From: Obrimoposthia wandeli
Lineage: Eukaryota
Reading direction: 5' to 3'
Length of the DNA: 64,000 nt
NCBI GenBank assembly: GCA_977020255.1
Contig: CDROCS010002910.1
Coordinates: 62,001-126,000, forward strand
The notes under the pieces were generated by a model. That model made no database searches. It was not told the DNA's origin and saw nothing but the letters and a program-made list of their open reading frames with translations. Position numbers and translations under genes: made by a program. Each line of letters starts with the position of its first letter. Positions within the stretch are counted from its first letter, which is position 1. Positions 6,001-41,494 of the stretch are shown in pieces.

Positions 6001-9000
6001 ACCAGTTGCTGTTAATGATTTAGGGAATAATACTCTAGAAGACACACCAATTACGGTAAATGCAATTGGCGCAAATGATACAGATGATGGAAATGTAGTT
6101 CTTTCATCAATTATATTAATTGATCCAAATAATGCAGCAAATACAGCAACAGCAGGTAACACTTTAACGATACCAAATGTTGGTCAATATGTAGTTGATA
6201 CAACTACAGGAAATGTAACATTTACACCAGAAGCAAACTATAATGGATCAGCAAGTGTAAATTATACAATAGAAGATAATGATGGATTAGTTTCTGCAAA
6301 TCAAGGAACAATAGGCATTACAGTAACTGCAGTAAATGATGCACCAGTAGCCCAAGCAGATACAAACACATTATTAGAAGATACACCATTAGTTGTAAGT
6401 TCAGTAAATGGATTATTAAGTAATGATACAGATACAGAGAACAACCCATTAACAATAACACAGTTTACAGTAGGAGGCACAAGTTATCCTGCAGGAACAA
6501 CAGTAACGTTAACAGAAGGAACATTAAAAATCAATTCAGATGGTAGTTACACATTTACACCAGCTACTGATTATAATGGCCCAATTCCACAGATAACCTA
6601 TACAGTAAGTGATGGAACAAACACATCAAACTCAACATTAGATTTAAGTGTTACAGCAGTAAATGATGCACCAATAGTAGTTGCAGATACGAACACAATA
6701 GCAGAAGATACACCATTAACAGTATCATCAGCAAATGGTATTTTGAATAATGATTCAGATCCAGAGAATGATAGTTTAACATTAACAGGTTTACTGATAA
6801 ATGGAAATCCTGCAACGGTAGGCGCACCAATCTTATTAACAGAAGGAACACTTCAAATTAATAATGATGGAAGCTATACGTTTACACCAGCATCAAACTT
6901 TAATGGGAATGTTCCACAAGTTACGTATACAGTAAGTGATGGTACAGATACTGCAACAAGTACTCTAGATATTGCAGTAATTGCAGTAAATGATGCACCA
7001 GTAGCACAAGTAGATACGAATACATTATTAGAAGATACACCATTAGTTGTAAGTGCTGCCAATGGATTATTGAATAATGACACAGATACAGAGAACAATC
7101 CATTAACAGTAACACAGTTTACAGTAGGAGGAACAAGTTATCCTGCAGGAACAACAGTAACGTTAACAGAAGGGACATTAAAAATTAATTCAGATGGTAG
7201 TTATACATTTACACCAGCTACTGATTATAATGGTCCAATTCCACAGATAACGTATACAGTAAGTGATGGAACAAACACATCAAACTCAACATTAGATTTA
7301 AGTGTTACAGCAGTAAATGATGCACCAGTTGTAGTTAATGATTTAGGGAATAATACTCTAGAAGACACGCCAATTACAGTAAATGAAATTGGAGCAAATG
7401 ATACAGATGATGGAACCCTAAATATTTCAACAATTGTATTAATTGATTCAAATAATCCATCAAATACAGCAACAGCAGGTAATACTTTAACGATACCAAA
7501 TGTTGGACAATATGTAGTTGATGGAACTACAGGAAATGTAACATTTACACCAGATTCAAATTATAATGGCCCAGCAAGTGTAAATTATACAATAGAAGAT
7601 AATAATGGATTAGTTTCTGCAAATCAAGGAACCATAGGTATTACAGTAACTGCAGTAAATGATGCGCCAGTAGCACAAGCAGATACCAACACATTATTAG
7701 AAGATACACCATTAGTTGTAAGTGCTGCCAATGGATTATTGAATAATGATACAGATACAGAGAACAATCTATTAACAGTAACACAGTTTACAGTAGGAGG
7801 TACAAGTTATCCTGCAGGAACAACAGTAACGTTAACAGAAGGAACTTTACAAATTAATTCAGATGGTAGTTATACATTTACACCAACTACTGATTATAAT
7901 GGCCCAATTCCACAGATAACGTATACAGTAAGTGATGGAACAAACACATCAAACTCAACATTAGATTTAAGTGTTACAGCAGTAAATGATGCACCAGTTG
8001 TAGTTAATGATTTAGGGAATAATACTCTAGAAGACACCCCAATTACAGTAAATGCAATTGGAGCAAATGATACAGATGATGGAACCCTAAATATTTCAAC
8101 AATTGTATTAATTGATCCAAATAATCCATCAAATACAGCAACAGCAGGTAATACTTTAACGATACCAAATGTTGGACAATATGTAGTTGATGGAACTACA
8201 GGAAATGTAACATTTACACCAGATTCAAATTATAATGGCCCAGCAAGTGTAAATTATACAATAGAAGACAATGATGGATTAGTTTCTGCAAATCAAGGAA
8301 CCATAGGCATTACAGTAACTGCAGTAAATGATGCGCCAGTAGCACAAGCAGATACCAACACATTATTAGAAGATACACCATTAGTTGTAAGTGCAGCCAA
8401 TGGATTATTGAATAATGATACAGATACAGAGAACAATCCATTAACAGTAACACAGTTTACAGTAGGAGGTACAAGTTATCCTGCAGGAACAACAGTAACG
8501 TTAACAGAAGGAACTTTACAAATTAATTCAGATGGTAGTTATACATTTACACCAGCTACTGATTATAATGGCCCAATTCCACAGATAACCTATATAGTAA
8601 GTGATGGAACGAATACATCAAATTCAACATTAGATTTAAGTGTTACAGCAGTAAATGATGCACCAGTTGTAGTAGCAGATACAAATACTATTGCAGAAGA
8701 TACGCCATTAACAGTATCATCAGCAAATGGTATTTTGAATAACGATTCAGATCCAGAGAATGATAGCTTAACAGTAACTGGTTTACAGATAAATGGAAAT
8801 CCTGCAACAGTAGGAACACCAATCGTATTAACAGAAGGAACTCTTCAAATTAATAATGATGGAAGCTATACGTTTACACCTGCAGATAATTTTAATGGAA
8901 ATGTACCACAAGTTACTTATACTGTAAGCGATGGTACAGATACTGCAACAAGTACTTTAGATATTGCAGTAACACCAGTAAACGATTCACCAATTTCAAA

Positions 9001-27308: not shown

Positions 27309-30300
27309 ATGAAAAAGAATGTGGGTATTTTATTTCTATTTGTTTTCGGTCTTATTATTTATATAGTTCCGTTAAAAATAGAAAAGAAGCAGGGTTTGCA
27401 AGAAAATTCTTCAAATTATTATAAACAGGATGCTATAAATAAGACTTTAAAACTTTCTAAAAAAGAAAGAGCAGCTGCCGAAATTCCACCAAATAAATAT
27501 CTAGAACAAAAGTATTCATTAGAAATAAACCCTCATACAGGTAGAACTCATCCAGAAAATATTTATAAAATTCAGCAAGAATTAAAAAATCAAAGATTAA
27601 ATAACCAAAGAACTCCCGGAGATGGAATAGACAATCAATGGGTAGAAAGAGGTCCTAATAATGTTGGTGGAAGAACTAGAGTTGTACTTTTTGATCCGAA
27701 TGACAATACAAATAAACGTGTTTTTGCTGGTGGAGTTTCTGGAGGTTTGTGGGTGAATAATGATATTACAGATGCAAATTCTTCTTGGTCAAGCATTGGA
27801 ATTGACGAAAACCTTTCTGTTACATGTATGGCTGTAGATCCTAACAATTCACAAATAATGTATTTGGGAACTGGTGAATTTTATTCTCCTCAGAGTGCAT
27901 TAGGAAATGGAATTTGGAAAACTATTGATGGAGGTGTAACTTGGGTAAATGTATATAAATTACGAGGAACAACTACTATTTCTAGTACTATAGAAGTACC
28001 AGGAACTTATTTTATGACAGATATAATTGTTAGAGATAAAGATGGTAGTTCTTCAACCACAGATGATTCAGAGGTTTTTGCTTCAATTGGAGGGAATTTC
28101 TATAGCTCAAATCCTATAAACACATACGTCGGAAGAGATAACTATGGAATTTTTAAATCAACTGATGATGGTGCAAACTGGTCAAAAGTTACTCTGAATA
28201 TGAATTCTGATGGAAGTGGAACCAGCGTAATGCCTAATGATTTTGAAATAGGGTCAGATAATACACTTTGGTTGGGAACCACAAGAGATATAGACGGAGA
28301 TGGTGGTGGACGTATATATAGTAGTGCTGATGGAACCACGTTTTCATTAAAGCACACAATTCCGGATGGAAAAAGAACAGAAATTGCGGTTTCTAAAATA
28401 AATGCGAATACAATATATGTTTTGGGAGATGTAAAAACTTACGATGGTTCTAATCAATTAATAGCACCTTTTGTAACACTTTTAAAAACTACAGATGGTT
28501 TTGTTTCTACACCAACAGTTTTGGCGTTACCAAATGATTTATCTAGCGATATTCCTGCAAATGATTTCACCAATGGGCAGGCATTTTATAATTTGGTTAT
28601 AGAAGTAGACCCAAATAATGATGCAATTGCTTATGCAGGAGGAATAAGTTTATTTAGAACTACAAATAGTGGAACTTCTTGGGATATACTAATGAAAAGA
28701 GGTCCAACTGTAGTCTTGCCTGGAACTACAGTTTCTTATGTACATGCAGATCAACATAGTTGGGCTTTTCACCCAACAGATTCTAATATATCTTTAATTG
28801 GTAATGATGGAGGTGTTTTTTATGCCACTTCTTTATCTTCTGCGTCTTCTAGTTCAACAGCTATTGTAGAAAGGAATAAAGATTATAATACCACTCAATT
28901 TTACCACGCTGATATTAGCCAAACAACAGATCCAGAGTATATTATTGGAGGTGCTCAAGATAATGGAATTCTTCTTTTTAATGAAGCCTCTAATGGTGCT
29001 AATTCAGCCATAAAAGTCTCAAGAGGAGATGGAACGCATTGTTTTATTCATAAAGATGGTGGGTATATGATTGTATCTAAAATATATAATAATATTTATC
29101 GCTATAACTTACCGTATACAGGATCAGTCGTTACTATCTCATCAGACAGTAATACAGGAAGATTTTTTAATGCGAAGGCATTAGATGAAAACTTAGATAT
29201 TCTTTACACCAATGGTGATGATCATTTAGCTCGATTTACGAATATTTCTTCTGGTTCTCCTTTGAGAACTAATATAATTGATCCTCTTTTAACGAATATT
29301 TCAGCGATTAAAGTATCGCCTTTTACATTAACTTCTTCTAAAGTTTATTTAGGTACAAGATCAGGGAAATTAATAAAAGTAGAAAATGCAAATACAGAAA
29401 CTCAAACAATAACAGATATTTCTTCAAGCTCATTTTTAGGTAATATTTCTTCTGTAGAATTCGGCGCTTCAGAAAATGAAATTATGGTTACTTTTTACAA
29501 TTTTGGTGTTGAAAGTATTTGGTTTACAACTGATGGAGGTACAAATTGGGATCATAAAGAAGGAGATTTTCCAGATATAAATGTGAGATGTATTTTAATG
29601 AATCCGCTAAACACTAACGAAGTTATTGTGGGATCAGAATTAGGGGTTTGGAATACTACTAATTTCAGAGATTCTTCACCTAATTGGCATCAATCTTATA
29701 ATGGAATGTCTGATGCTACTGTAACTTCTTTTAATCTAAGAACAATAGATAATACAGTATTGGCTACTACTTATGGTAGAGGTATGTTTACAAGTAAGTT
29801 TACTGGAAATGTTTTAACAACTTGGACAGGTGCTATTGATTCCGATTGGGTAAAAGCAGGAAATTGGTCTAATGGATTACCAACAAGTAGTATGGACGTT
29901 AAGATTCCAGATACAAACAACGAGCCTGTAATAAATTCATCTGTAACGATACAAAATGTTTCTATAGAGTCAGGTTCATCTTTAACGATCAATACTCAGA
30001 GTTCTTTAAGTGTTAAAGGAAACTTAACTAACTCTGGTGATTTATTTATAAACTCTAGTTCATCGAATTCAGGAAGTTTAATTGTGGAAGGCAATTCAAT
30101 AGGAGATATAACTTATAATAGGTCTGTTACTGGAAGTTGGCATTTAACAAGTTCTCCCGTAAATGGTCAGAATTATAATAATGATTGGGTTTCAGAAAAT
30201 TCAATTGAGTCTGGAACCATAGATACAAGCCTAAGAGGAATTGCTTCTTATAATAATGATTCTGGAAATTGGAATTATATGTTAGCTGGAGATGATTCCC

Positions 30301-31373
30301 CTTTTGTACAAGGCGCTGGATATTCTACAAAAAGAACAGAAGCAGGAAATTTATCTTATACAGGAACAATTTTAACAACAGGTACAACGAAAGCCATATC
30401 AAAAGGAACAAATAATGCTTTTAATCTTATAGGGAACGTATATACATCTCATATTCCTTTAAATAATGATGCAGACAATGCAAATAATTTTTTAGTTACA
30501 AATACAAGTTTATTAGAAGAGGCAACCATTTGGCTTTGGGATGGGACTTCTTACATTACCGTAAATCATGCAACATCTTCACAGTTTCTTGCTCCAGGAC
30601 AAGGGTTTTTTGTAAAATCATCAGACGCAGGAGGATTGGTATCTTTTACAACATTAATGCAAAATCATAAAACAGTAACTTTCTTAAAAAAGCAACAATC
30701 AAGATCAGGAATAAAATTGACTCTTAATAAAGGAGAAGATAAAAAATCTACGGATATATATTATATAGAAGGTACAACAGAAGGTTTTGATAATGGTTAT
30801 GATAGTTCTATTTATTCTGGAGTATCTAGTAATTTAGAAATCTATACAAAATTAGTTCATCAAGAAATAGATATAAATTTATCAATTCAATCAATTCCTG
30901 AAGATTATTCAATTGTTGTTCCTATTGGTATAATTGCTGAAGCTAATATAGAAATGAGTATTCGTGTTGAAGCAAAAAATATTGAACAAGGTAAAAAGGT
31001 CTATTTAGAAGATAGAATAAGAGGTGTTTTTACATTGATAGATGATACTGAAACTTCGTATAGTTTTACTAGTGAAGAAGCTGTGAAAGGTTCAGGAAGG
31101 TTTTATCTACATACTTCTTCGGAAGTACTAAATATTCAAAACACTCAATTATCTGATGAAACCATTTTCTATGCTAAAGATAAAATTCATTTTTCAGGAT
31201 TGCCTTCGGGAAAAAAATCTATTAAAATTTACAATACAATTGGTCAATTATTGTTGAAAGAAAATATTTATTCAAATCATTCGATTTCTGTAGTTAAGTT
31301 ACCAAAAGCAATTTATATTGTTCAGATTGAAACAGAAAAAGGAACTATTAAGAAGAAAATAATGCTAAAATAG
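27309..31373 (+). CDS. Secreted BNR/VPS10-like beta-propeller protein with T9SS type A CTD
   Basis: WVERGPNNVGGRTR...DPND...FAGGVSGGLW, repeated S/T-x-D-G-G-x-T/N-W Asp-box motifs, HADQH. C-terminus ..IYNTIGQLL...KLPKAIYIVQIETEKGTIKKKIMLK. Confidence 0.8.
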   Translation: MKKNVGILFLFVFGLIIYIVPLKIEKKQGLQENSSNYYKQDAINKTLKLSKKERAAAEIPPNKYLEQKYSLEINPHTGRTHPENIYKIQQELKNQRLNNQRTPGDGIDNQWVERGPNNVGGRTRVVLFDPNDNTNKRVFAGGVSGGLWVNNDITDANSSWSSIGIDENLSVTCMAVDPNNSQIMYLGTGEFYSPQSALGNGIWKTIDGGVTWVNVYKLRGTTTISSTIEVPGTYFMTDIIVRDKDGSSSTTDDSEVFASIGGNFYSSNPINTYVGRDNYGIFKSTDDGANWSKVTLNMNSDGSGTSVMPNDFEIGSDNTLWLGTTRDIDGDGGGRIYSSADGTTFSLKHTIPDGKRTEIAVSKINANTIYVLGDVKTYDGSNQLIAPFVTLLKTTDGFVSTPTVLALPNDLSSDIPANDFTNGQAFYNLVIEVDPNNDAIAYAGGISLFRTTNSGTSWDILMKRGPTVVLPGTTVSYVHADQHSWAFHPTDSNISLIGNDGGVFYATSLSSASSSSTAIVERNKDYNTTQFYHADISQTTDPEYIIGGAQDNGILLFNEASNGANSAIKVSRGDGTHCFIHKDGGYMIVSKIYNNIYRYNLPYTGSVVTISSDSNTGRFFNAKALDENLDILYTNGDDHLARFTNISSGSPLRTNIIDPLLTNISAIKVSPFTLTSSKVYLGTRSGKLIKVENANTETQTITDISSSSFLGNISSVEFGASENEIMVTFYNFGVESIWFTTDGGTNWDHKEGDFPDINVRCILMNPLNTNEVIVGSELGVWNTTNFRDSSPNWHQSYNGMSDATVTSFNLRTIDNTVLATTYGRGMFTSKFTGNVLTTWTGAIDSDWVKAGNWSNGLPTSSMDVKIPDTNNEPVINSSVTIQNVSIESGSSLTINTQSSLSVKGNLTNSGDLFINSSSSNSGSLIVEGNSIGDITYNRSVTGSWHLTSSPVNGQNYNNDWVSENSIESGTIDTSLRGIASYNNDSGNWNYMLAGDDSPFVQGAGYSTKRTEAGNLSYTGTILTTGTTKAISKGTNNAFNLIGNVYTSHIPLNNDADNANNFLVTNTSLLEEATIWLWDGTSYITVNHATSSQFLAPGQGFFVKSSDAGGLVSFTTLMQNHKTVTFLKKQQSRSGIKLTLNKGEDKKSTDIYYIEGTTEGFDNGYDSSIYSGVSSNLEIYTKLVHQEIDINLSIQSIPEDYSIVVPIGIIAEANIEMSIRVEAKNIEQGKKVYLEDRIRGVFTLIDDTETSYSFTSEEAVKGSGRFYLHTSSEVLNIQNTQLSDETIFYAKDKIHFSGLPSGKKSIKIYNTIGQLLLKENIYSNHSISVVKLPKAIYIVQIETEKGTIKKKIMLK

Positions 31374-33416: not shown

Positions 33417-33484
33417 AAAAAGGTTGCCAAATTTGACAACCTTTTTATAATTAGCATTACAATCTCCCAACTGTAATGCTTTTT
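33417..33484. terminator. Two tandem hairpins between convergent genes
   Basis: AAAAAGGTTG..CAACCTTTTT (33417-33446) and AGCATTACA..TGTAATGCT-TTTT (33453-33484). Confidence 0.7.
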
Positions 33485-33485
33485 A

Positions 33486-33662
33486 TTAGAACCCAGTACC
33501 TGGTGCTTCTGGACTTGAAGCTTGCGCTTTCTGTGGGTTTAGAATTAAGTAAGTTCCTAAAGCTGTTAACGCAGCATATTTACCATAATTTCCTATTTTT
33601 TTAATTGCTTCTTTACGAGTAATTTCTTGAGCAATATCTTGACTTTTTTTTATGTTTTTCAT
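33486..33662 (-). CDS. 58-aa small protein absent from the ORF track; signal-peptide-like leader plus short tail
   Basis: Hand translation: MKNIKKSQDIAQEITRKEAIKKIGNYGKYAALTALGTYLILNPQKAQASSPEAPGTGF*. Starts 27 bp after the T9SS gene stop and is followed by hairpins. Confidence 0.75.
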   Translation of the reverse strand: MKNIKKSQDIAQEITRKEAIKKIGNYGKYAALTALGTYLILNPQKAQASSPEAPGTGF

Positions 33663-33689
33663 GATGTTCTGTCTTTAAAATTATCGTTA

Positions 33690-36600
33690 TTATTCTAAGA
33701 TTATTTTTTTGTTCAATTTCCCGTTTTTAGTTTCTAACTTAACAAGATAAACTCCTTTAGCTAATTTTGGTAAGGAAATATCTTTAACTCCATTAGATGT
33801 AAAAGAAGAATTTAGAACTTCTTTTCCTAAGAGTGAGAATAGCTTAAAAGAAACATCATTTTTAGATAAACCAGCAATTCTTAATGTAGCGTTATCAAGT
33901 TTATAGATGCTTATGTTTTTTAAAACTAAGTTTTTATCAACACTAAGTGCACTATTGGTTGTATGCATATAAAAACGACCAATTCCGTTTAAAGCTTCTT
34001 TTAAAGTTATCTTATAAGTACTATTTACTTCATCTAAACGTGTAAAAGTATTAGTTACTCTATCTTCTAAAAATAGTTTCAAATCAGAATCAAAATTAGA
34101 AACATTTAATGAAAAAGTAATTTCTTTACCACTTTCTGTATTTACACCAACAGGAACTATCATATTTTCAAAACCTGTATTTGGTAAAGCTTGTATAGCA
34201 AAATCTACTCCATCACTATTACTAACTAAATGCGTAAACACTCTAAAGTTATTACTTACTCCAGTAAAAACACCAACATCAGACCCCACATCTAAACCAG
34301 TTGTTCTATTTTGTATATATCTAATTTTTGTTGATGAGGTATTAGTTCCTTCATCAATTTTTAATATCATTTCAGGATAACTTGTATTATTCTTTAAAAA
34401 GATATTTCCTGTTTGATGCGTTTGCATTGCTTCAGTAAAACTTGCAGAAGTTCCTCCACCATCAGGTGCATGTACAAAGAATGCTTGCCCAGGAGCAATA
34501 AAGAAATCGTCATCTACAGATTTAACATCATAAGGAGTACTTCCGTTCCATAGGTAAACACCAGATTTCGCTGGGTCTAACGTACTTGCATCAATATTTA
34601 CTCTTAAAAAAGAATTAGTTTCATCTGTACTACTTCCTCCTTTTAGAGCAGCAGTATAAGGGCTACTAATTAAATTCCATCTATTTCCAGTAGGGTCATC
34701 TCCACCATCTGTAATAGCAATTGTTTCTCCTGCATTATTTACGTTTAAAGTACCTGTAAAATCTAAAGTACCAGCAGTTGTTTTTTTAACTGAATATCCC
34801 TTTGCTTTGGTGAAATTACCAGCTGCACCAATATTTCCAGTTGTGTAGTAACTCCAACGAGAAGCAGATACTTCCGTATTATCATAGAGTGCAATAGATT
34901 TATTAGTAGTTGTTCCACTAGTTAAAAGAGAACCAGAAAAGCCATTTATATCTTGTCCATTTACTGGAGCTCCAACTAAATGCCATCCTTCTGTTCCAAC
35001 ACCAGAGGTTGTTAAATATCTTTTATACGTTACATTCCCTGTAGCAGTTCCTTTTACAATTAAAGAACCATTTGTGGTGGCATCAGAATCTATATTTAAT
35101 GTTCCACCTTGGGTAAGGTTTCCATTTACAGTTAATGAGTTACCAGTTTGAATATTTAGCGTTCCTGTTATATTTAAATTGTTAATAGTAACAGAACTAA
35201 TATTTAGCTCAGGACTATTAGGAATAACAACATTATCTGAACTTATTGGTATTCTAGCTAAAGACCAATTACCTCCAACAGACCAATTACCACCTGCAGA
35301 TAAATAAGTATTGGTTTGATTTGCTTCTGATGTAAAACTTAAGTCTGTTGTAGCTGAAATACCTGCATAGTTATTGTTTGCAGCATCTTTAAAAGCAGTA
35401 TTATCTACTTGAACATAGTACTCAGTATTTAAATCTAAGTCAGATGTAGGATTAATTGTAGCTTTAGTTGTTGTTATTGAAACAGAACCAGAAGTAACTG
35501 CAATAGTTTCTACAGTACTGTTATCAGATGTTTTTTTGATAATAATATTTCCACTAGTTCCTTTGCTGATATTTTCAGAAAAAGTTAATTCTATGTTATT
35601 ACTAATAACAACATTAGTAGCATTATCTAAAGGAGAAGTTAGAGTTAAAGTTGGTAAAACACCATCAATTAATAAGGCCTTATTATCTCCTAAAGAGTTT
35701 GCTGCTCCTGGAGTTGGTAAAGTCAATGTTGCATCTTTATTACCAGAATCTCTTATACTTGTTCCTGCTGTTAATGAGTTTGTTGCAACATAATCTAAAT
35801 CTGCACTAGTATCTCCTGCTTGTACATTATAATTAAATTGTATAGTATTTGTTCCACTACCTGTACCATTATAGTTTATGGTTCTATTTGTTGTACCAGT
35901 TTCTAATGTAATTTGTGGTGTACCAGTTACAGTAACATTTTCATTAAAAGTTACGGTTACAATAACATTGTCGCCTGCTTTATAAGTTCCGTTTGCAGTT
36001 GTTGCACTTACGCTAGTTACTGTTGGTGCTACTGCACTTGAAATAACAGTAGTTCCATTGTTTGTATCTGTGTCTGTGCCATCATTAATAACAACTGTAA
36101 AAGTTGTAGTTTCTGATGTTGAACTTCTATTATCTGTAGGGTTAAAACTTAACGCTCTTAATTTTGCTTGTAAGTCTGCAGTTGTAGTACTTGCAAGAGC
36201 ATAAGGTCCTGTACCTGTTAAACCTGTACCAGATAAAACACCTTTAGCATTGTTGTCTAAAGTAATAGTTGCAGAAACATTATCTCCATCTGCATCTGAT
36301 GTTGTTATTGAAGAAAAAGGATTTAATGTAGCAGTATCATTTACATTTTGTCCTGCAGATGTGCCTCCAATTGTTGGTGCAGTGTTTGCAACATTTCCTG
36401 TTAGTTTAAGTTCGTCTATAGCAAATTCTTCACTCCCGGAATTAGCTCTTATTGTAATTCTGATATTTAATGTAGTTCCAGTACTTGCTAAAGTTTTTGT
36501 AATTTTTTGAAATGTTAGCCCGAGTGTAACAGTTCCGTTAGATAAACTATGGCCAGAAGCTGGACCATCACGTAGAAACTCTGTAACCTTATCAAATCCT

Positions 36601-37031
36601 CCTCCATTTATTTGAGTCTCGATTAATATTCTATCTGCTGCATCCCAAGCGAAAACATCAGCCGCTAAATCTATTGATAATTCCAGACCAGTATAACCTG
36701 TAATATCTATGCTAGACCATGTTAAAGATACTTCATCTGGAAATGATGACGCTCCTGCGTCTAAATCTTCTCCCATCAAATAACTCCCTGTATTCCCCGT
36801 ATACACAGGAAATCCCATAGCTGTTGGGGCCCCGTCAAAATCGGTATTAGTTCCAGCAGGATCATAGATTCCAAAATAATCACTAGAAGCACCTGTGAAA
36901 AATGGACTACTTTTGGTAAAACCAGAATCATTATTAAAGGATTCTAATAAGAGTGTTGTTTGAGAAAAAACTTCATTTTTAAATAATAAAGAAAATAATA
37001 AAGAAAATAAGATGAGTGTAATTTTTTTCAT
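33690..37031 (-). CDS. Secreted Ig-like-domain protein with T9SS type A CTD
   Basis: Signal peptide, N-terminal jelly-roll-like domain, Ig-like segments (APTVTSVS...YKAGD..VTVTFNE; LTFSENI..G...I.IKK..D...E.I). CTD ..FSLLGKEVL...LAKGVYLVKLET.NG..NKKIILE. Confidence 0.85.
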   Translation of the reverse strand: MKKITLILFSLLFSLLFKNEVFSQTTLLLESFNNDSGFTKSSPFFTGASSDYFGIYDPAGTNTDFDGAPTAMGFPVYTGNTGSYLMGEDLDAGASSFPDEVSLTWSSIDITGYTGLELSIDLAADVFAWDAADRILIETQINGGGFDKVTEFLRDGPASGHSLSNGTVTLGLTFQKITKTLASTGTTLNIRITIRANSGSEEFAIDELKLTGNVANTAPTIGGTSAGQNVNDTATLNPFSSITTSDADGDNVSATITLDNNAKGVLSGTGLTGTGPYALASTTTADLQAKLRALSFNPTDNRSSTSETTTFTVVINDGTDTDTNNGTTVISSAVAPTVTSVSATTANGTYKAGDNVIVTVTFNENVTVTGTPQITLETGTTNRTINYNGTGSGTNTIQFNYNVQAGDTSADLDYVATNSLTAGTSIRDSGNKDATLTLPTPGAANSLGDNKALLIDGVLPTLTLTSPLDNATNVVISNNIELTFSENISKGTSGNIIIKKTSDNSTVETIAVTSGSVSITTTKATINPTSDLDLNTEYYVQVDNTAFKDAANNNYAGISATTDLSFTSEANQTNTYLSAGGNWSVGGNWSLARIPISSDNVVIPNSPELNISSVTINNLNITGTLNIQTGNSLTVNGNLTQGGTLNIDSDATTNGSLIVKGTATGNVTYKRYLTTSGVGTEGWHLVGAPVNGQDINGFSGSLLTSGTTTNKSIALYDNTEVSASRWSYYTTGNIGAAGNFTKAKGYSVKKTTAGTLDFTGTLNVNNAGETIAITDGGDDPTGNRWNLISSPYTAALKGGSSTDETNSFLRVNIDASTLDPAKSGVYLWNGSTPYDVKSVDDDFFIAPGQAFFVHAPDGGGTSASFTEAMQTHQTGNIFLKNNTSYPEMILKIDEGTNTSSTKIRYIQNRTTGLDVGSDVGVFTGVSNNFRVFTHLVSNSDGVDFAIQALPNTGFENMIVPVGVNTESGKEITFSLNVSNFDSDLKLFLEDRVTNTFTRLDEVNSTYKITLKEALNGIGRFYMHTTNSALSVDKNLVLKNISIYKLDNATLRIAGLSKNDVSFKLFSLLGKEVLNSSFTSNGVKDISLPKLAKGVYLVKLETKNGKLNKKIILE

Positions 37032-37075
37032 AATATATTGGTTTAGTTTAAGTTTTAAAAGTGATATTATAAAAG

Positions 37076-37107
37076 AAAAAAAACAGGTATAACTACCTGT
37101 TTTTTTT
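37076..37107. terminator. A/T-flanked hairpin CAGGTA-TAAC-TACCTG (terminator and/or operator)
   Basis: Perfect inverted repeat with A8/T8 flanks between the tail-collar gene and the T9SS gene. Confidence 0.6.
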
Positions 37108-37122
37108 CAAAAAAGTAAATTC

Positions 37123-37752
37123 TTAACTTCTTGGTGGATAAAGACCTTCCATACATATTATATAATTAAGACCTAAACTTGGTTGTATATTGCTAAAAGC
37201 AACATTATTTCCTGTCATACCAACTGTTACGTCACCGCCTGTTGCAGTAATAGCTACTGGTGCAGTAAAAGGTTTTAAAGTTGTATCTGCAGCCTCAGAG
37301 CTATAAGCATTTACTACGTTTCCATTTTTTATTACTTCTTGAGTCGCAAAAACAGAACCAACACCTGGTACAGAAGTATCAGCAGAATCAGCTACCGCAG
37401 GTACAGAAACAGTCGCTTCTGCTGTTGCTGTAATACCTGTAACTAGAGCAGTATGGTTATGAGCTGGTAAATTTTTTGTAATTAGAGTTGTCGTTTCATT
37501 ACCCTCTTTCTCTCCTAATCTATAAGCTGATAATCCTGGTCCTGCTGAATTTCCTCCAGAGTTTACAGGTACTCTACCTCTTAAATCGGGTAAAGCAAAT
37601 GTAGTTCTTCCATCTCCACCATAAGTGGTTCCTAAAATTGAAAATAAAGATTGGTTTTGTGCGATTGGTAATAATTGCCCATTGCAGTAAGCCCAGTTTC
37701 TTGGAGCAAAATTTCCTGCAAACATTTTAATAATTCCGATGTACTCATCCAT
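37123..37752 (-). CDS. Phage tail-collar domain protein (MdpB/'microcystin-dependent protein' family)
   Basis: YIG.IKMFAGNFAP.NWAYCNGQLLPI.QNQ.LFSILGTTYGGDGRTTFALPDLRGR, LPAHNH, and C-terminal NIQPSLGLNYIIC.EGLYP.RS. Confidence 0.92.
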   Translation of the reverse strand: MDEYIGIIKMFAGNFAPRNWAYCNGQLLPIAQNQSLFSILGTTYGGDGRTTFALPDLRGRVPVNSGGNSAGPGLSAYRLGEKEGNETTTLITKNLPAHNHTALVTGITATAEATVSVPAVADSADTSVPGVGSVFATQEVIKNGNVVNAYSSEAADTTLKPFTAPVAITATGGDVTVGMTGNNVAFSNIQPSLGLNYIICMEGLYPPRS

Positions 37753-37784
37753 GTTATAAAGTTTTTAGTTGGTTAAACATGTTT

Positions 37785-37881
37785 CAAATGTAGTTGTAAC
37801 AAATGATGAGGTTTAGAGTGTTAAATACTGAAAGTAAAAAAGGGTATAAATACTTATTTTATAAGTATTTATACCCTTTTT
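37785..37881 (-). promoter_or_regulatory. Tail-collar promoter (-7 TACATTTG) with upstream 21-bp perfect inverted repeat holding two 6-4-6 sites
   Basis: Minus-strand TACATTTG at 37785-37792. AAAAAGGGTATAAATACTTAT-TTT-ATAAGTATTTATACCCTTTTT at 37837-37881, which can also act as the response-regulator terminator. Confidence 0.6.
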
Positions 37882-37899
37882 ATTTATTAGTGAATGAAA

Positions 37900-38580
37900 C
37901 TACAGGTTAAAATCTGGCGTAATTTCTATTAATTTTTTTTGAATTCCATAAATAACTAAACCAGCTACATTTTTAGATTGCGTTTTTAAAAGAAGGTTAT
38001 TTCTATGCCCCTCTACCGTTCTTGGGCTTATAAAAAGTTTGTCGGCAATTTCTGCAGTTGTTTTTTGAGCACAAATTAATTCTAAAACATCTATTTCTCT
38101 TTTAGACAGTAGTTTTTTATCTAAATCGCTTTTTATACGTTTTCCACTAGATGATATAATATTCTCATGTATAATTGTTAATACTTTTTCATCATAATAA
38201 AAACCCTTATCATACACTTCATTAATTGTATGAACTACCGTTTTTGGGCTTGTGTTTTTAAGAAGATAAGAAGAAGCGCCAACATCTATCATGTTAGTAA
38301 TAAAAGATTTACCACCATAACTAGTAAGTGCAATTATTTTTATTTCTGGATATTTTTTATGAATAATTTTAGTAGCTTCTACACCATTAACTTCTGGCAT
38401 ATTTAAATCCATTAAAATTACATCTGGGAGCTCTTCTGTTTTATTAATAAAGGTTATTAATTCTTTGCCATTTTCTGCTTCATAAATGATGTTAAAATTG
38501 TCTTCTCTTTCTAATAAAAAACGAATTCCACTTCTAAAAAGCTGCTCGTCATCGGCAATTATTATATTAATTTGTTTCAT
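37900..38580 (-). CDS. NarL/FixJ (LuxR-HTH) family response regulator
   Basis: IIIADDE, DVILMDLNMP, ALTSY, YLLKN receiver motifs. LSKREIDVLELIC...T.EIADKLFISPRTVEGHRNNL HTH. Confidence 0.95.
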   Translation of the reverse strand: MKQINIIIADDEQLFRSGIRFLLEREDNFNIIYEAENGKELITFINKTEELPDVILMDLNMPEVNGVEATKIIHKKYPEIKIIALTSYGGKSFITNMIDVGASSYLLKNTSPKTVVHTINEVYDKGFYYDEKVLTIIHENIISSSGKRIKSDLDKKLLSKREIDVLELICAQKTTAEIADKLFISPRTVEGHRNNLLLKTQSKNVAGLVIYGIQKKLIEITPDFNL

Positions 38581-38593
38581 AATTTGGGGGCTA

Positions 38594-39385
38594 TTATATT
38601 ACAATGAAAATTTTAAAACCTTTACCTATTTCACTTCCAATACTATATTTTCCATTTAATAGGGAAACTCTACTTTCTATATTTTTCATTCCAAGTCCTT
38701 TCTTATTATCAATATTATTAGAATTAAAACCAATACCATTATCAGTATAATTAAAAATTAATTGATTGTTTTTTAAAGAAATGTTTATAGTACTATTATT
38801 TGCTTTTCCGTGTCTTACAGAGTTGTTAATTAACTCTTGCGTAATTCTAAAAAGGTGTAATTCGTTTTGTGGTATTAAATGTTTTTTTGGATAGTTAATA
38901 GTATATTCAATATTAATTTTTCTGCTATTATTAAATTCATCTGCCAATTCTTCTACTGCATCTTTAAACCCAAATTCTTCAAGAATTGGGGGCAATAAAT
39001 TATGGGCAATTTTTCTTGCACTTTCTAGGGTTTTCTCGGTTGCTTTTAAAATACCGTTATTAACTATTTTAAATTCTTCTGGTGTTAATTCTCCATCTTT
39101 TAAAAGATTTGCATTCAGGTTAATCACATTTAACTTAGAGCTAATGTCGTCATGTAAATCTTGTGCAATACGTTTGCGCTCTTTTTCTTGAGTTATAATA
39201 ATAGATTGTATAATTTCTTTTTGATGCGTTATTTCGAGATTTTTTTTCTCAAGTTCTTTTTCCACTATTTTTTTTCTTGAGAAAAAGAAAAATAATAGTA
39301 AAGAAATTCCCATAATTAGGAGTAACAGAACACTTATTATAACTACAGCAATCACTTGGTCTTGTTTAGCAACTAATTCTTCCAT
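38594..39385 (-). CDS. HisKA_3 sensor histidine kinase with one TM and no evident sensory domain
   Basis: TM at about aa 12-36. QEKERKRIAQDLHDD H-box, FRITQELINNSVRHG N-box, DNGIGF and GLGMKNI G-boxes. Confidence 0.93.
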   Translation of the reverse strand: MEELVAKQDQVIAVVIISVLLLLIMGISLLLFFFFSRKKIVEKELEKKNLEITHQKEIIQSIIITQEKERKRIAQDLHDDISSKLNVINLNANLLKDGELTPEEFKIVNNGILKATEKTLESARKIAHNLLPPILEEFGFKDAVEELADEFNNSRKINIEYTINYPKKHLIPQNELHLFRITQELINNSVRHGKANNSTINISLKNNQLIFNYTDNGIGFNSNNIDNKKGLGMKNIESRVSLLNGKYSIGSEIGKGFKIFIVI

Positions 39386-39407
39386 TTGGGGCTTTGATGT
39401 GTAAAAT

Positions 39408-39523
39408 CAAAATTACGGAAAAATATTTTTACACAAGATAATGCTAACAAAGTGAAATAAAAAGCCTGAAGTGAAAATCAGGGGTTTATACTTGTTTTTG
39501 TATTCTTAGTATAAACCCCTGAT
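39408..39523 (-). promoter_or_regulatory. HK/RR promoter (TTG-18-TAATTTTG) and upstream inverted repeat with two 6-4-6-like sites
   Basis: Minus-strand TAATTTTG at 39408-39415 and TTG at 39434-39436. ATCAGGGGTTTATACT...AGTATAAACCCCTGAT at 39477-39523. Confidence 0.55.
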
Positions 39524-39525
39524 TA

Positions 39526-40167
39526 TTATCTCTTTTTTAAATGTATGTGTTTTCTAAAATTTTTATACCATTCTATAAAAACCATAATTTGAAAAATTAA
39601 ATATAGGAATGCATTTATATCCCAAACATATAATTTAAGTTCTCTAGAATCTATGTTTCCTAAAGTGAAAATTAATGTACTACAAAGTGTATAAACAAAG
39701 AAACCAGAGTTAAAGTAAATGTATTTTTTGTCTTTATAGTCATCTATCTTTTTTACAAAAAAGTAAAAACTATAAATTAACAATGGTATGGATGTTAAAA
39801 CAATTTCTAACTGATTCCATCTTTTAAATGCTTCAGGATAATTATATAGATATATAATAAAATACAAAGCAATTACAAGAGTTAAAATCCAATTTAAGAT
39901 CTTAAATTTTTTGAAACTCTGTAATGTTGAAAAGAACAGACTTAAAAAAATAAACTGACCTATAAAAAAATAATGACTTAAAAATAAGTTGTTTATTCCT
40001 TTTGTACTAAAATTATTAGAAACTAATTGAATAACAGAACAAAGCACTAAATACATAATAAAGTATTTTATAGCTTTGTCTTTTTTAGTATAACTTAGAG
40101 TAAATACTACTGTATTTAGAATTAAAAAAAAGTACCCTGCATTTATTATGAAATCATCGAAGATCAT
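39526..40167 (-). CDS. Multi-pass (about 6-7 TM) membrane protein, paralog 2
   Basis: Hydrophobic segments throughout. Shares NL(F/H)L.H..FIGQF.FLS.FF, E.V.TSIPL..YS, FNSG.F.Y..CSTLIF and W..NA.LYLI.QI.V...WYKNFRK with 40295-40927. Confidence 0.8.
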   Translation of the reverse strand: MIFDDFIINAGYFFLILNTVVFTLSYTKKDKAIKYFIMYLVLCSVIQLVSNNFSTKGINNLFLSHYFFIGQFIFLSLFFSTLQSFKKFKILNWILTLVIALYFIIYLYNYPEAFKRWNQLEIVLTSIPLLIYSFYFFVKKIDDYKDKKYIYFNSGFFVYTLCSTLIFTLGNIDSRELKLYVWDINAFLYLIFQIMVFIEWYKNFRKHIHLKKR

Positions 40168-40176
40168 TTAATTAAA

Positions 40177-40290
40177 TCAGTTTAATGGGGTTTTTGTATC
40201 ACAGAATTCAGTATGTGGTCTTGAAAAATTATAAATAGGATCACTTTAAACTACTAAAGTAAATCCATCTTTAGAAGAAATCATATCTTT
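40177..40290 (-). pseudogene. Decayed 3' remnant of a second PCPxxC gene
   Basis: Translates KDMISSKDGFTLVV*SDPIYNFSRPHTEFCDTKTPLN*. Aligns ungapped with the intact C-terminus KDMISSNDGETLDADSGAIFDATKPCPDSCDFTSPLMQ* (17 of 37 positions identical), with an in-frame stop and no 5' part. Confidence 0.85.
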
Positions 40291-40294
40291 TATA

Positions 40295-40927
40295 CTATTC
40301 ATTAATCTTTCTAAAGTTTTTATACCAATCTATAGAAACTAAAATTTGATAAATCAGGTAAAGGATTGCATTAAAGAGCCAAATATAAATTTTTATGTCC
40401 GATTTTAAACTACCAGCAACAAAAATTAAAGTACTGCATGTAATGTAAAGGAACAAACCTGAGTTAAAAAAAAGAAATTTTTTGTTATCACTATCTATTC
40501 TCTTTACTAAGAAAATTAAACTATAAGCAATTAATGGAATAGAAGTAACTACAACTTCAAAAATATTATGTTCAGTTAAAAATTCTGGATAGATAAAATA
40601 GCAGACACCTAAAGAAAACAATGCCATAAATAAATAGATTCTTATAATATTAGAAAGTAACTTATTTTTAAACTCTAGTATAAAAAAGAAACTTAAAAAA
40701 AGAAACTGACCAATAAAGTAAAAGTGCGTCAAATGAAGGTTTGACTCTTTTAGACTATGAAGGTAATTCATTCTTAACTGAATGATTAAAACATACAATA
40801 AGTAAAATGCAATAATTTTAAAAGCTACCGTTTTTTTACGGTAGCTTTTAAAAAAAAGAAATGTATTTAAAATTAAAATAATATACCCTAAATCAGCTAT
40901 TATATTAAAAATTTCTTTAGAATCCAT
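40295..40927 (-). CDS. Multi-pass (about 6-7 TM) membrane protein, paralog 1
   Basis: Same conserved motifs as 39526-40167; starts 1 bp after the PCPxxC gene stop. Confidence 0.8.
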   Translation of the reverse strand: MDSKEIFNIIADLGYIILILNTFLFFKSYRKKTVAFKIIAFYLLYVLIIQLRMNYLHSLKESNLHLTHFYFIGQFLFLSFFFILEFKNKLLSNIIRIYLFMALFSLGVCYFIYPEFLTEHNIFEVVVTSIPLIAYSLIFLVKRIDSDNKKFLFFNSGLFLYITCSTLIFVAGSLKSDIKIYIWLFNAILYLIYQILVSIDWYKNFRKINE

Positions 40928-40928
40928 T

Positions 40929-41312
40929 TTATTGCATTAAAGGACTCGTGAAGTCACATGAATCTGGACATGGTTTAGTTGCATCAAAAATAGCACCACT
41001 ATCAGCATCTAGAGTTTCACCATCATTAGAAGAAATCATGTCTTTTCCATTTTTATCTACGCCTACAAACATTAATTTTTCTTCAAAAATAGTTTCTCCT
41101 GTTTTTTTATCTTCAGATTTTTTAACGCCTAAATATCCTCTAACACTTACAGCACCTTCTTCAATTACTTCTTTTAAGTCTATTAAAGGAATTGTAAAAG
41201 CTCTACAATCGAAGTATTTATTATAAGAAGCTTCATCATCTCTCCATTCTGTAGCCCATTTTTGAGCTTTTTGTAAGCTGATTTTGTTAATTTTTTTTGG
41301 TTGTTTTTCCAT
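40929..41312 (-). CDS. Small cytoplasmic hypothetical protein with C-terminal PCPxxC motif
   Basis: 127 aa, no signal peptide. ISL..AQKWA.EWR, RAF.IP..DL, VRGYLG, EKLMFVGVD..GKD and D.TKPCPDSCD.TSPL. From recollection this family recurs next to two-component genes in Bacteroidota; not verified here. Confidence 0.8.
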   Translation of the reverse strand: MEKQPKKINKISLQKAQKWATEWRDDEASYNKYFDCRAFTIPLIDLKEVIEEGAVSVRGYLGVKKSEDKKTGETIFEEKLMFVGVDKNGKDMISSNDGETLDADSGAIFDATKPCPDSCDFTSPLMQ

Positions 41313-41380
41313 GTTTAATAGTATTTAAGTTTATAAATAATTTGGGTTAGGCTATAAATCTAAATAAAAATAAAGAAAAA

Positions 41381-41461
41381 GGAGGGTTAATACTTCTATT
41401 TATATTGATAAACACGTGTTTTTACCTGTTTTTTTAATCTGTTTTTAGGTGTTTTCCTTTA
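41381..41461. promoter_or_regulatory. Phased array of 6-4-6 pseudo-palindromes upstream of the PCPxxC gene
   Basis: GGAGGG-TTAA-TACTTC (41381), CACGTG-TTTT-TACCTG (41413), TAGGTG-TTTT-CCTTTA (41446); spacings 32 and 33 bp. Confidence 0.5.
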
Positions 41462-41494
41462 TTAGGTGTTTAAAAAAAAGTGTATTTTCGTTAC

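Follow-up and report, generated by a model that had tools for sequence, protein, structure and literature searches.

An undescribed four-gene signalling cassette with a stand-alone seven-transmembrane protein in marine Polaribacter

A window of 64 kb, the whole stretch of DNA that was analysed, contains an undescribed signalling cassette of four genes carried by marine Polaribacter. These genes encode a small protein with a CPxxC tail (PCPxxC protein, PCP below), a seven-transmembrane (7TM) protein, a histidine kinase and a response regulator. A palindrome, the probable binding site of the regulator, is also present upstream of adjacent genes whose products are surface or secreted proteins. 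In our best reading, the regulator would control its own cassette and drive those genes. Taken as a whole, a four-gene sensory cassette with a 7TM sensor, autoregulation and accessory outputs is the explanation that we favour, with moderate confidence. The first-pass annotation, which had proposed a self-contained signalling locus, is supported in part. Its observation of intact genes, a relic and a palindrome is confirmed, and its statement that it knew of no characterised system composed in this way is in line with our searches.

Gene content and conservation

The block (33486-41480, minus strand) is flanked by uvrC on one side and by lspA/DUF4230 on the other. All eight of its ORFs are intact and co-oriented, as first described, and one relic accompanies them (Table 1). 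Domains were assigned using Pfam and NCBIfam profiles.

Table 1. Features of the block and of its intergenic regions.
Feature	Position	Strand	Evidence
Palindromic 6-4-6 site, uvrC/PCP divergent promoter region	41413-41428	.	best PWM match
PCPxxC protein, 127 aa	40929-41312	-	ORF
Membrane protein 1, stand-alone 7TM, 210 aa	40295-40927	-	ORF, predicted structure
Relic of second PCPxxC gene	~40183-40290	-	tblastn
Membrane protein 2, stand-alone 7TM, 213 aa	39526-40167	-	ORF
Two-copy motif hairpin, kinase side	39470-39524	-	PWM, RNA fold
Presumed -7 promoter box TAATTTTG	39408-39415	-	conserved block in 14 aligned loci
HisKA_3 histidine kinase, 263 aa	38594-39385	-	Pfam
NarL/LuxR-type response regulator, 226 aa	37900-38580	-	Pfam
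Perfect 21+21 nt hairpin, two motif copies	37837-37881	.	PWM, RNA fold
Phage tail-collar domain protein, 209 aa	37123-37752	-	Pfam Collar
Hairpin with exact motif	37075-37108	.	pattern, PWM, RNA fold
T9SS cargo, 1113 aa	33690-37031	-	Pfam, TIGR04183
58-aa small protein	33486-33662	-	ORF
Terminator of cargo-peptide unit	33417-33446	-	RNA fold

The kinase has one N-terminal TM helix and neither an extracytoplasmic nor a PAS domain. It matches HisKA_3 (3.9e-9) and HATPase_c (5.9e-11) as well as the NCBIfam LiaS model (5.4e-26), the latter below the model cut-off. The regulator is composed of a REC domain (Response_reg, 2.4e-25) and a GerE HTH domain (4.2e-14). Its matches to NCBIfam NarL-family models all lie under the equivalog cut-offs.

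Genes for PCP, 7TM protein (1 to 4 copies), kinase and regulator are found in the same order, between uvrC and lspA, in 16 of 16 Polaribacter-type loci. Three further contigs of the same assembly carry this cassette between the same two genes. Within a sample of 251 Bacteroidota genomes, PCP was detected in 14 (15 matches); kinase and regulator genes follow every match and a 7TM gene was detected for 13 of them. The same four genes in the same order were also retrieved on metagenomic contigs reached via distant 7TM relatives. At locus L044, the cassette adjoins genes resembling a class V lanthipeptide cluster.

The collar protein matches Pfam Collar (1.8e-29), PHROG tail proteins and, weakly, the T4 short tail fibre (1OCY). 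Neither a signal peptide nor a T9SS CTD was found in its sequence. It is a candidate regulated output. The T9SS cargo (Big_5, 1.2e-15; Por_Secre_tail, 6.3e-7; TIGR04183, 2.2e-9) is predicted to be adhesin-like, with a Big_5 Ig-like domain and a C-terminal sorting domain. The 58-aa protein starts 27 nt past the cargo stop. Its leader is Tat-like (R-K), and the 10 residues that follow A-Q-A form a conserved tail. It is 86-93% identical in syntenic loci and has no match in Pfam or NCBIfam. Its family counts at least 3030 proteins and is represented more than once per genome.

In about half of all loci, the cassette has a collar gene as a neighbour. Two independent layouts occur: in Polaribacter this gene lies downstream of the regulator, elsewhere it is divergent from PCP. 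Cargo and 58-aa peptide, both lineage-specific additions, are missing from more loci than the collar, the peptide from most. A collar...T9SS...peptide module also occurs in Lutibacter and in Polaribacter SA4-10. In the latter it is kept without the kinase system, and the three genes are therefore not strictly dependent on that system. Co-occurrence of the components holds for PCP, 7TM protein, kinase and regulator; the collar, T9SS and peptide genes are not a constant part of the system.

The 7TM proteins and the PCPxxC protein

Membrane protein 1 is predicted to fold into seven helices (AF2 pLDDT 95.5, pTM 0.91). All top structural matches of the model are GPCRs or rhodopsins, with Foldseek TM values of 0.5-0.6 and, across about 200 of 210 residues, Z scores of 11-13, within the range that helical bundles also reach through arrangement alone. 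Membrane protein 2 is its paralog (44% identity). It weakly matches 7TMR-DISM_7TM (E 2.3e-3, below the Pfam gathering score). Such 7TMR-DISM matches were obtained for 6 of 76 family members, the best at E 6.6e-4, again below the Pfam threshold, and AFDB cluster neighbours of the 7TM protein are named 7TM-DISM receptor. Among the best 150 of 1111 relatives, all 150 are free-standing proteins of about 210 aa. Distant members adjoin single-TM kinases of other classes, either HisKA with PAS or HisKA_2 with a LytTR regulator, and the member at L079 is a 7TM-HAMP-HisKA-HATPase-REC-AraC fusion. The loops of the 7TM protein are very short. Conserved polar residues are located within helices 3 and 6; such residues inside 7TM helices are typical of a ligand pocket. 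The retinal-binding lysine was not found in the sequence of helix 7. The best reading is that the 7TM protein would serve as sensor for the sensor-less kinase.

The PCPxxC protein carries an invariant C-terminal P-C-P-x-x-C-D-x-x-S-P-L. Its conservation spans the full length, and the AF2 model is folded (pLDDT 72). The family comprises at least 230 proteins, all annotated 'hypothetical'. Searches gave no family match in Pfam or NCBIfam and no fold match among PDB structures, and neither a named family nor a paper was found. The PCP stop codon and the start codon of membrane protein 1 are one base apart. The relic preserves the final 36-37 codons of a gene of the PCP family; it contains an in-frame stop and no longer has the first Cys (tblastn 46 bits and up to 62% identity, versus at most 18.9 bits in 50 shuffles). 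The PCP-7TM pair duplicates as a unit, visible as an intact PCP-7TM-PCP-7TM arrangement in L034 and L035 and as the relic here.

The predicted PCP-7TM complex scored 0.34, versus 0.01 for the best control. Of 78 solved complexes, 51 attained this mark, as did 2 of 108 mismatched pairs; it was graded as weak support. At least 87% of the contacts agree between runs, with a partner pLDDT of at least 69. We propose that the PCPxxC protein may be the partner of the 7TM protein.

The same prediction could also suit a different, unlikely division of roles. PCP would then be the real sensor, a cytoplasmic thiol/metal switch (Cys36 and the C-terminal CPxxC) docking on the basic cytoplasmic loops of a 7TM protein that is only a membrane scaffold coupling PCP to the kinase. 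In the close family, C115 and C119 do not vary and the conservation of C36 is 90% or more. PCP is acidic and the cytoplasmic loops predicted for the 7TM protein are basic, and 119 of 120 close PCP homologs have no export signal. However, the second Cys of the tail is not universal, some cassettes reading CPPAGD or PCPPASD, and Sec or lipoprotein signal peptides are present on some distant PCP-like proteins. Some 7TM-kinase pairs do without any PCP-like gene (L077), and the polar residues inside the 7TM helices are those expected of a ligand pocket. A 7TM protein that itself receives the signal remains our preferred reading.

A palindrome upstream of PCP, kinase and collar genes

With at most 3 mismatches allowed, the plain pattern CAGGTA-N4-TACCTG shows no enrichment across the window (24 occurrences versus 17.5 +/- 4.4 expected). 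Its excess over a control differed between genomes, at 14 versus 2, 6 versus 0 and 4 versus 1, but 3 versus 6 in one. A PWM was then trained only on sites upstream of PCP in other genomes (orthologous loci). Its top three matches in the 64-kb window (41413, 37084 and 39479) are all in intergenic regions of the block, and 6 of the 9 best lie in the four intergenic regions, the one upstream of PCP included, for which a recurrent palindrome had been reported. Matches of 14 bits or more number 5 in the window, versus 0.37 expected in the shuffled window, and 18 in ~196 kb of sampled Bacteroidota cassette loci, mostly at cassette/collar borders.

The best match of the window (41413-41428, 18.6 bits) reads CACGTG-TTTT-TACCTG on the plus strand, 101-116 nt upstream of the PCP start. 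Orthologous sites in other loci are located 110-140 nt upstream of PCP. Because it folds weakly as RNA (-5.1 kcal/mol, no stable hairpin), we regard this site as a DNA motif and not a terminator. It is a probable operator of the regulator.

On the kinase side, the 39470-39524 hairpin (-24.1 kcal/mol) contains two inverted copies of the motif (39479-39494, 15.8 bits; 39506-39521, 10.1 bits). It is the terminator-like end of the PCP-7TM unit and probably also the operator of the kinase-regulator promoter. In 14 loci, the kinase-upstream site always lies ~94 nt from the kinase start, whereas anything between 8 and about 1200 nt separates it from the upstream gene. The TATTTTTCCGTAATTTTGT block is kept in the 14 aligned loci. 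The TAATTTTG box, 23 nt upstream of the kinase ATG, is one that we take to be a Bacteroidota-type -7 promoter box, according to the TAnnTTTG consensus of Bacteroidetes promoters. The spacer between site and box is conserved in length, not in sequence.

The 37837-37881 hairpin (-24.1 kcal/mol; copies at 37841-37856 and 37862-37877, 12.1 and 11.4 bits) is both the terminator of the kinase-regulator unit and a site upstream of the collar gene; orthologous sites are 93-145 nt upstream of collar genes. An exact CAGGTA-TAAC-TACCTG (37084-37099, 0 mismatches, 16.5 bits) lies within the 37075-37108 hairpin (-18.7 kcal/mol). This hairpin is the terminator after the collar gene, and its site precedes the start of the T9SS cargo gene by 53-68 nt. 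In L023, L025 and L027, the orthologous site is about 30 nt past the collar stop. All three hairpins form strong A-run/hairpin/T-run terminator-like structures. The block therefore consists of at least four transcription units rather than a single operon.

The palindrome is conserved across genomes upstream of PCP, kinase and collar genes. Sites are found in the divergent collar/PCP regions of six sampled Bacteroidota loci (L046, L048, L050, L051, L054 and L056) and of the distant modules L021, L022, L039 and L040. This pattern fits an autoregulated regulon, with the restriction that three of the four positions in the block double as terminators. The hairpin copies may have a purely terminator or other DNA-element role.

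It is improbable, in our view, that an ordinary two-component system simply sits beside unrelated genes, with palindromes that are bidirectional intrinsic terminators sharing a favoured stem, and with collar, T9SS cargo and peptide genes that are synteny neighbours and no regulon. Three copies do form hairpins of -18.7 to -24.1 kcal/mol with T runs behind them, and similar palindromes are found at the 3' ends of unrelated genes, including between convergent genes, in two Polaribacter genomes. The absence of collar, cargo and peptide from about half of the cassette loci and their retention in SA4-10 point the same way. However, the best-scoring and weakly folding copy is located between two divergent starts, where no terminator is needed, and the kinase-upstream copy is placed at a fixed distance from the downstream start, not from the upstream stop. 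The other terminator of the block (33417-33446, -15.2 kcal/mol) has a stem unrelated to the motif and no PWM match. The excess of strong PWM matches in cassette loci over the shuffled window and the two independent collar-cassette arrangements also argue against terminators alone.

Proposed mechanism and related systems

In the sensory cassette that we favour, the 7TM protein, with its GPCR/rhodopsin-like fold, would be the signal-receiving module. Its state would be passed sideways in the membrane to the lone TM helix of the kinase. PCP, made together with the 7TM protein, may act as its partner or modulator; this is the weakest step. The kinase, given its domains, would phosphorylate the NarL-type regulator, a dimer of which is expected to bind the conserved CAGGTA-N4-TACCTG; A and T runs usually border this palindrome. 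Autoregulation would result from the sites in front of the PCP-7TM unit and of the internal kinase-regulator promoter. The tail-collar gene and the cargo/peptide unit, which in this lineage are also preceded by sites, would be accessory outputs specific to the lineage. Three of the sites form part of strong terminator hairpins, and each of these therefore also ends the preceding unit.

A quorum-sensing-like loop, which the first-pass annotation had mentioned as a possibility, is very unlikely. In such a loop, an exported product, either the last 10 residues of the Tat-like 58-aa peptide or the CPxxC end of PCP, would be sensed by the 7TM protein with positive feedback via the regulator. The signal-like leader ending in A-Q-A before a conserved tail, the sites upstream of PCP and kinase, the export of some distant PCP-like proteins and the lanthipeptide-like genes at L044 would suit it, but Pfam and NCBIfam searches found no synthase, protease, other processing enzyme or exporter at the locus. 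Most cassette loci do not have the peptide, which is also present where the kinase system is absent and belongs to a large multicopy family, and PCP is a folded 127-aa protein, conserved over its full length and, like nearly all its close homologs, signal-less.

Among known systems, the 7TMR-DISM receptors (RetS, LadS, RgsP, NicD; PF07695) are also seven-helix membrane modules feeding signal-transduction outputs. The weak sequence matches, the AFDB neighbour names and the relative fused to HAMP-HisKA-HATPase-REC recall them. In contrast, the cassette 7TM protein scores below the gathering score, has no extracellular DISMED domain and is free-standing; its partners in trans are a one-TM kinase and a small protein with a CPxxC tail.

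In LiaFSR, BceRS-BceAB, WalK-YycHI and SaePQRS, input-less kinases depend on separately encoded membrane proteins. The cassette kinase likewise has no input domain of its own, and LiaS is of the same HisKA_3/NarL class. However, the accessory protein of the cassette is no relative of LiaF, BceAB or YycHI and has a GPCR-like fold of seven TM helices, the kinase carries a single TM helix instead of two, a soluble CPxxC-tailed component is added, and the cassette belongs to Bacteroidota, not Firmicutes.

In archaeal phototaxis, sensory rhodopsin II, a free-standing 7TM protein, acts sideways on the TM helices of HtrII, a transducer encoded separately that controls a histidine kinase. The mechanism proposed for the cassette is of this kind, and the fold matches of its 7TM protein include microbial rhodopsins; the likeness is one of analogy only. 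The cassette protein differs by the missing retinal lysine in helix 7, by a partner that is the kinase itself and by an output that would be transcription and not chemotaxis.

In Rhizobium leguminosarum, the tail-collar protein RhiB is encoded in the rhiABC(D) operon, which is flanked by the gene of the LuxR-family regulator RhiR (PMC13133039). RhiR belongs to the AHL-binding LuxR proteins and has RhiI as its synthase, whereas the cassette regulator is of NarL type, would be phosphorylated by its kinase and has no synthase. The proximity of a tail-collar gene and a LuxR-type regulator gene is nevertheless a precedent for the collar link (PMC13133039).

A bacterial contig with a conserved sensory cassette

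The contig is bacterial and its best relatives are Polaribacter. The assembly that holds it amounts to 1.35 Gb in 6912 contigs and contains several further flavobacterial contigs. Contigs C5902, C3493, C361, C4888 and C5715 of this assembly reveal at least four distinct Polaribacter-like genomes that share the uvrC...lspA locus (identity of the PCPxxC protein, 58-77%), together with two diverged copies of the cassette described below. The deposited "genome" is therefore that of a host plus a flavobacterial community.

The first-pass annotation described eight intact minus-strand genes in the block between the uvrC and lspA sides, and all eight ORFs are indeed intact (see table). It also placed a relic gene between the two membrane protein genes. 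This relic corresponds to the final 37 codons of another PCPxxC gene, with at most 62% identity and a score of 46 bits, to be compared with at most 18.9 bits for shuffled sequences. It carries an in-frame stop and has lost the first cysteine.

Positions of the features discussed, in window coordinates
Feature	Position	Strand	Remarks
Giant ORF, 6772 aa	59-20377	+	internal repeats
1354-aa protein	27309-31373	+	C-terminal region related to the T9SS cargo
Terminator-like hairpin	33417-33446		predicted
58-aa peptide	33486-33662	-	intact ORF
T9SS cargo, 1113 aa	33690-37031	-	Big_5 and C-terminal sorting domain
Terminator-like hairpin	37075-37108		predicted
Matrix match, collar|cargo	37084		among the three best
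Collar-domain protein, 209 aa	37123-37752	-	assigned with Pfam
Terminator-like hairpin	37837-37881		predicted
NarL-type regulator	37900-38580	-	assigned with Pfam and NCBIfam
HisKA_3 kinase, 263 aa	38594-39385	-	one N-terminal TM helix, no input domain
Terminator-like hairpin	39470-39524		predicted
Matrix match, 7TM|kinase	39479		among the three best
Membrane protein 2 (7TM), ~210 aa	39526-40167	-	paralogue of membrane protein 1
Relic of a second PCPxxC gene	about 40183-40290	-	between the two 7TM genes
Membrane protein 1 (7TM), ~210 aa	40295-40927	-	paralogue of membrane protein 2
PCPxxC protein, 127 aa	40929-41312	-	C-terminus PCPDSCDFTSPL
Matrix match, upstream of the PCPxxC gene	41413		among the three best

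Four of the components, the PCPxxC protein, the 7TM protein, the kinase and the regulator, form a cassette that recurs in other genomes, as the first-pass proposal of a signalling locus would have it. Within the same assembly, three Polaribacter loci are syntenic (uvrC ... lspA) and two modules are diverged and lie outside this synteny; species genomes added 18 loci. The gene order is the same in 16/16 Polaribacter-type loci: PCPxxC, 7TM (1 to 4 copies), kinase, regulator. Two of these 16 display the arrangement PCPxxC-7TM-PCPxxC-7TM, the intact counterpart of the relic arrangement seen here. Of 251 evenly sampled Bacteroidota genomes, 14 have the PCPxxC protein; all 15 matches have the kinase and the regulator downstream, and a 7TM gene was detected in 13 of the 15. 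Metagenomic loci reached from distant 7TM relatives again bring together a small CPxxC-tailed protein, a 7TM protein, a HisKA_3 kinase and a NarL regulator. The component families thus do occur together, and the first-pass proposal withstands the check in which their separate occurrence would have told against it. Searches of the literature on 7TMR-DISM with Bacteroidetes kinases, on tail collar in Flavobacteria or Polaribacter and on intramembrane-sensing kinases with 7TM accessories returned nothing on this cassette. The first-pass observation stands, and its interpretation is borne out in part. The block contains a conserved sensory cassette without a name, which has a probable operator for autoregulation and, depending on the lineage, surface or secreted outputs. 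We rate the cassette as a two-component system whose membrane sensor is split from the kinase and accessory to it.

Two neighbourhoods deserve mention. In one metagenomic locus (L044:528-4286), the cassette adjoins LanC-like, HopA1-like and APH-kinase genes and a 58-aa ORF, a composition that recalls a class V lanthipeptide cluster of three components. In Polaribacter sp. SA4-10 (CP019331.1), the same chromosomal place is devoid of the PCPxxC-7TM-kinase-regulator cassette and a 93-aa Peptidase_A8 (lspA) fragment adjoins uvrC; the collar gene, the T9SS cargo gene and two peptide genes are retained. This looks like a deletion or a rearrangement.

The palindromic motif

One palindrome had been reported in four intergenic regions of the block, including that upstream of the PCPxxC gene. 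In an alignment of the uvrC|PCPxxC regions of other genomes, CAGGTA-N4-TACCTG is conserved as a single or double copy. A search for this plain pattern with 3 mismatches allowed showed no enrichment in the 64-kb window; only a weighted matrix separates signal from noise. The matrix was trained on the aligned uvrC|PCPxxC sites, the window being left out. Its three best matches in the 64 kb all lie in the block (see table), and the intergenic DNA of the block holds six of the nine best; the remaining strong matches are within the 6772-aa ORF.

Similar sites occupy corresponding positions in other loci. Upstream of the kinase gene, the site is ~94 nt from the start with a constant gap, the distance to the upstream gene being highly variable. 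The alignment of this region shows in order the palindrome, a spacer conserved in length and not in sequence, and a conserved TAnnTTTG-type -7 box. Collar genes also have upstream sites, and six sampled Bacteroidota loci carry sites in the divergent collar|PCPxxC region (L046, L048, L050, L051, L054 and L056). Sites were also found upstream of the gene of a 419-aa secreted protein in six of the sampled Bacteroidota loci (L049, L050, L052, L054, L055 and L056).

Some of these palindromes also have the features of intrinsic terminators. Four hairpins of the block contain G+C, are stable (fold energy -15 to -24 kcal/mol; z -6.6 to -8.2) and run into a stretch of T, and they are predicted to be terminator-like. 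Three of the motif copies of the window are located in strong hairpins of this kind (-18.7 to -24.1 kcal/mol), whereas the copy upstream of the PCPxxC gene reaches only -5.1. Elsewhere in Polaribacter genomes, similar palindromes mark the 3' ends of genes, in some cases in between two convergent ones. An initial reading, in which the palindromes were merely terminators of unrelated sequence, was revised after the alignment of orthologous uvrC|PCPxxC regions and the matrix test. We take the motif for a genuine DNA element that goes with the cassette and is most likely the operator of the regulator. Because several copies double as predicted terminators, the block would be split into at least four transcription units and would not be a single operon. 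The motif, as an A-run/palindrome/T-run element, is also conserved in two Polaribacter species (L059:3091 and L069:2991), between a gene for a secreted protein of 289-316 aa and a convergent gene for a ~415-aa lipoprotein. It may be a terminator only, or a further target.

The 7TM proteins, the kinase and the PCPxxC protein

The kinase contains HisKA_3 (PF07730, 3.9e-9) and HATPase_c (PF02518, 5.9e-11) domains, both above gathering scores. At its N-terminus, one hydrophobic helix (about residues 11-35) leads straight into the HisKA_3 region. The kinase is therefore distinct from intramembrane-sensing kinases of the LiaS/BceS type, which have two TM helices joined by a very short linker. The regulator is composed of a receiver (PF00072, 2.4e-25) and a GerE/LuxR HTH domain (PF00196, 4.2e-14). 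It reaches no equivalog cut-off in NCBIfam and thus is not a named orthologue.

The AlphaFold2 model of the 7TM protein has seven helices (pLDDT 95.5, pTM 0.91) and corresponds to a seven-helix receptor fold. All the top PDB matches are GPCRs or microbial rhodopsins, with Z scores of 11-13 that are within the range helical bundles reach by arrangement alone. Neighbours in AFDB are named 7TM-DISM receptors (TM 0.63-0.84). A microbial rhodopsin is unlikely since, in both paralogues, helix 7 has lysines at its ends only and the retinal-binding lysine is missing. Membership of PF07695 (7TMR-DISM_7TM) does not hold at the sequence level: membrane protein 1 gives no match, and membrane protein 2, with 18.3 bits, stays below the cut-off of 29. 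Weak matches to this family were obtained with 6/76 members of the 7TM family (best E 6.6e-4). With 210 aa and loops of at most 17 residues, the protein has neither an extracellular DISMED domain nor a fused cytoplasmic output domain.

The 7TM family comprises 1111 clusters in public data and is present in 41/251 sampled Bacteroidota genomes, that is, in more than the PCPxxC protein. The best 150 of the 1111 are all free-standing, none being fused to a kinase. The sole fusion found, in a distant member among weak genome matches (L079), joins the 7TM protein to HAMP-HisKA-HATPase-REC-AraC. Distant members adjoin single-TM kinases of other classes, either HisKA with PAS or HisKA_2 with a LytTR regulator. 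Mainly because of this modular pairing with one-helix kinases, we consider the 7TM protein a candidate input module of the kinase. Sensor-less kinases are common among two-component systems, and few have a known input. The cassette offers a concrete, testable candidate: a receptor-fold 7TM family recorded always beside single-helix kinases, and once fused to a kinase.

The PCPxxC protein belongs to no Pfam or NCBIfam family, and no literature on it was found. Its model folds moderately well (pLDDT 72). A fold search gave no match in the PDB (best E 0.035, TM about 0.2), and AFDB and the Atlas returned only uncharacterised Bacteroidota proteins. Conserved residues are W23, R58, a GVD-type core and the P-C-P-x-x-C-D-x-x-S-P-L tail. 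Among 120 close homologues, 119 have no hydrophobic N-terminus and keep the CPxxC motif. Some distant homologues have Sec or lipoprotein signals, and the second cysteine is missing in some.

We propose that the PCPxxC protein is a partner of the 7TM protein, mainly because their genes are coupled and the pair is duplicated as a unit. Modelling lends weak support to such an association: the predicted complex scored 0.34, to be compared with 0.01 for the best control, a mark reached by 51/78 solved complexes and 2/108 mismatched pairs. Runs agreed on at least 87% of contacts, with a partner pLDDT of at least 69. More broadly, a free-standing GPCR-fold 7TM protein might act in trans with one-TM-helix kinases of any class, usually with a small CPxxC protein as co-receptor or tethered ligand, the output in Flavobacteriaceae being tail-collar and T9SS surface proteins. 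We put forward this widespread, undescribed mode of Bacteroidota sensing tentatively, as somewhat less probable than its negation. If true, it would provide a first handle on the role of the abundant non-phage tail-collar proteins.

Collar, T9SS and peptide genes

The collar protein matches PF07484 above the gathering score (E 1.8e-29, residues 6-62) as well as PHROG tail families. About half of the loci have collar genes (1 to 3) next to the cassette. They are located either downstream of the regulator gene (Polaribacter) or divergent from the PCPxxC gene (Olleya, other Flavobacteriaceae and six of the sampled Bacteroidota loci). The T9SS cargo has a type A sorting domain at residues 1050-1112 (PF18962, 6.3e-7; TIGR04183, 2.2e-9). 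In the window, as in the two diverged modules, collar genes are followed by genes for proteins with a T9SS C-terminal domain.

The 58-aa peptide belongs to a family of at least 3030 members with more than one copy per genome. No match was found in NCBIfam or Pfam at E up to 0.1. One relative is named "Tat pathway signal protein" in one source; the peptide itself has T-R-K in place of R-R, and no curated model recognises a twin-arginine signal in it. In both contexts looked up, one of them SA4-10 without the kinase cassette, the peptide gene again closes a collar...T9SS module, located at the same site of the chromosome. A conserved 56-aa ORF (MS.NSKQAVLDALKKEGV...) is located downstream of the peptide gene in two sister contigs (L015:53-223 and L018:762-932, both minus strand) and is not present in the window.

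The likeness to a quorum-sensing cassette suggested at first does not hold. Such a cassette has, beside the receptor, either the gene of a signal synthase or a precursor gene accompanied by processing and export genes, and none of the eight products matches families of this kind in Pfam or NCBIfam. Most cassette loci, moreover, have no gene for the 58-aa peptide. The view of the collar, T9SS and peptide genes as outputs survives in part. Sites upstream of collar genes argue for it, but these genes are accessory: many cassette loci have no collar, T9SS cargo or peptide gene, and SA4-10 keeps all three kinds without the cassette. The locus would also provide a probable operator that is defined and a probable regulon of a few members, namely tail-collar proteins, an adhesin-like T9SS cargo and a short peptide that is exported. 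A regulatory input would thereby be linked to the tail-collar proteins that cells encode outside phages. Polaribacter species count among the main degraders of polysaccharides in the sea, and they associate with algae or animals. A surface-remodelling switch in these bacteria would be of ecological interest.

In other genera, a conserved secreted protein of ~419 aa without a Pfam family is encoded downstream of the regulator, with a motif site in front (L049:9685-10947; orthologues in L050, L052, L054, L055, L056 and L078). It is likely a further member of the regulon. In L078, its gene directly adjoins a 7TM gene. The protein is absent from the Polaribacter contig of the window and present on other contigs of the assembly.

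Two other large proteins are encoded on the plus strand of the window. The 6772-aa ORF, with identical 16-mers at 6021/7344/8013, 10398/13044 and 11265/11928, probably encodes a very large surface protein built of repeats. The ~540-aa C-terminal region of the 1354-aa protein shows 34-36% identity with orthologues of the 1113-aa cargo. This protein is a second member of the adhesin-like family of the cargo, on the other side of lspA.
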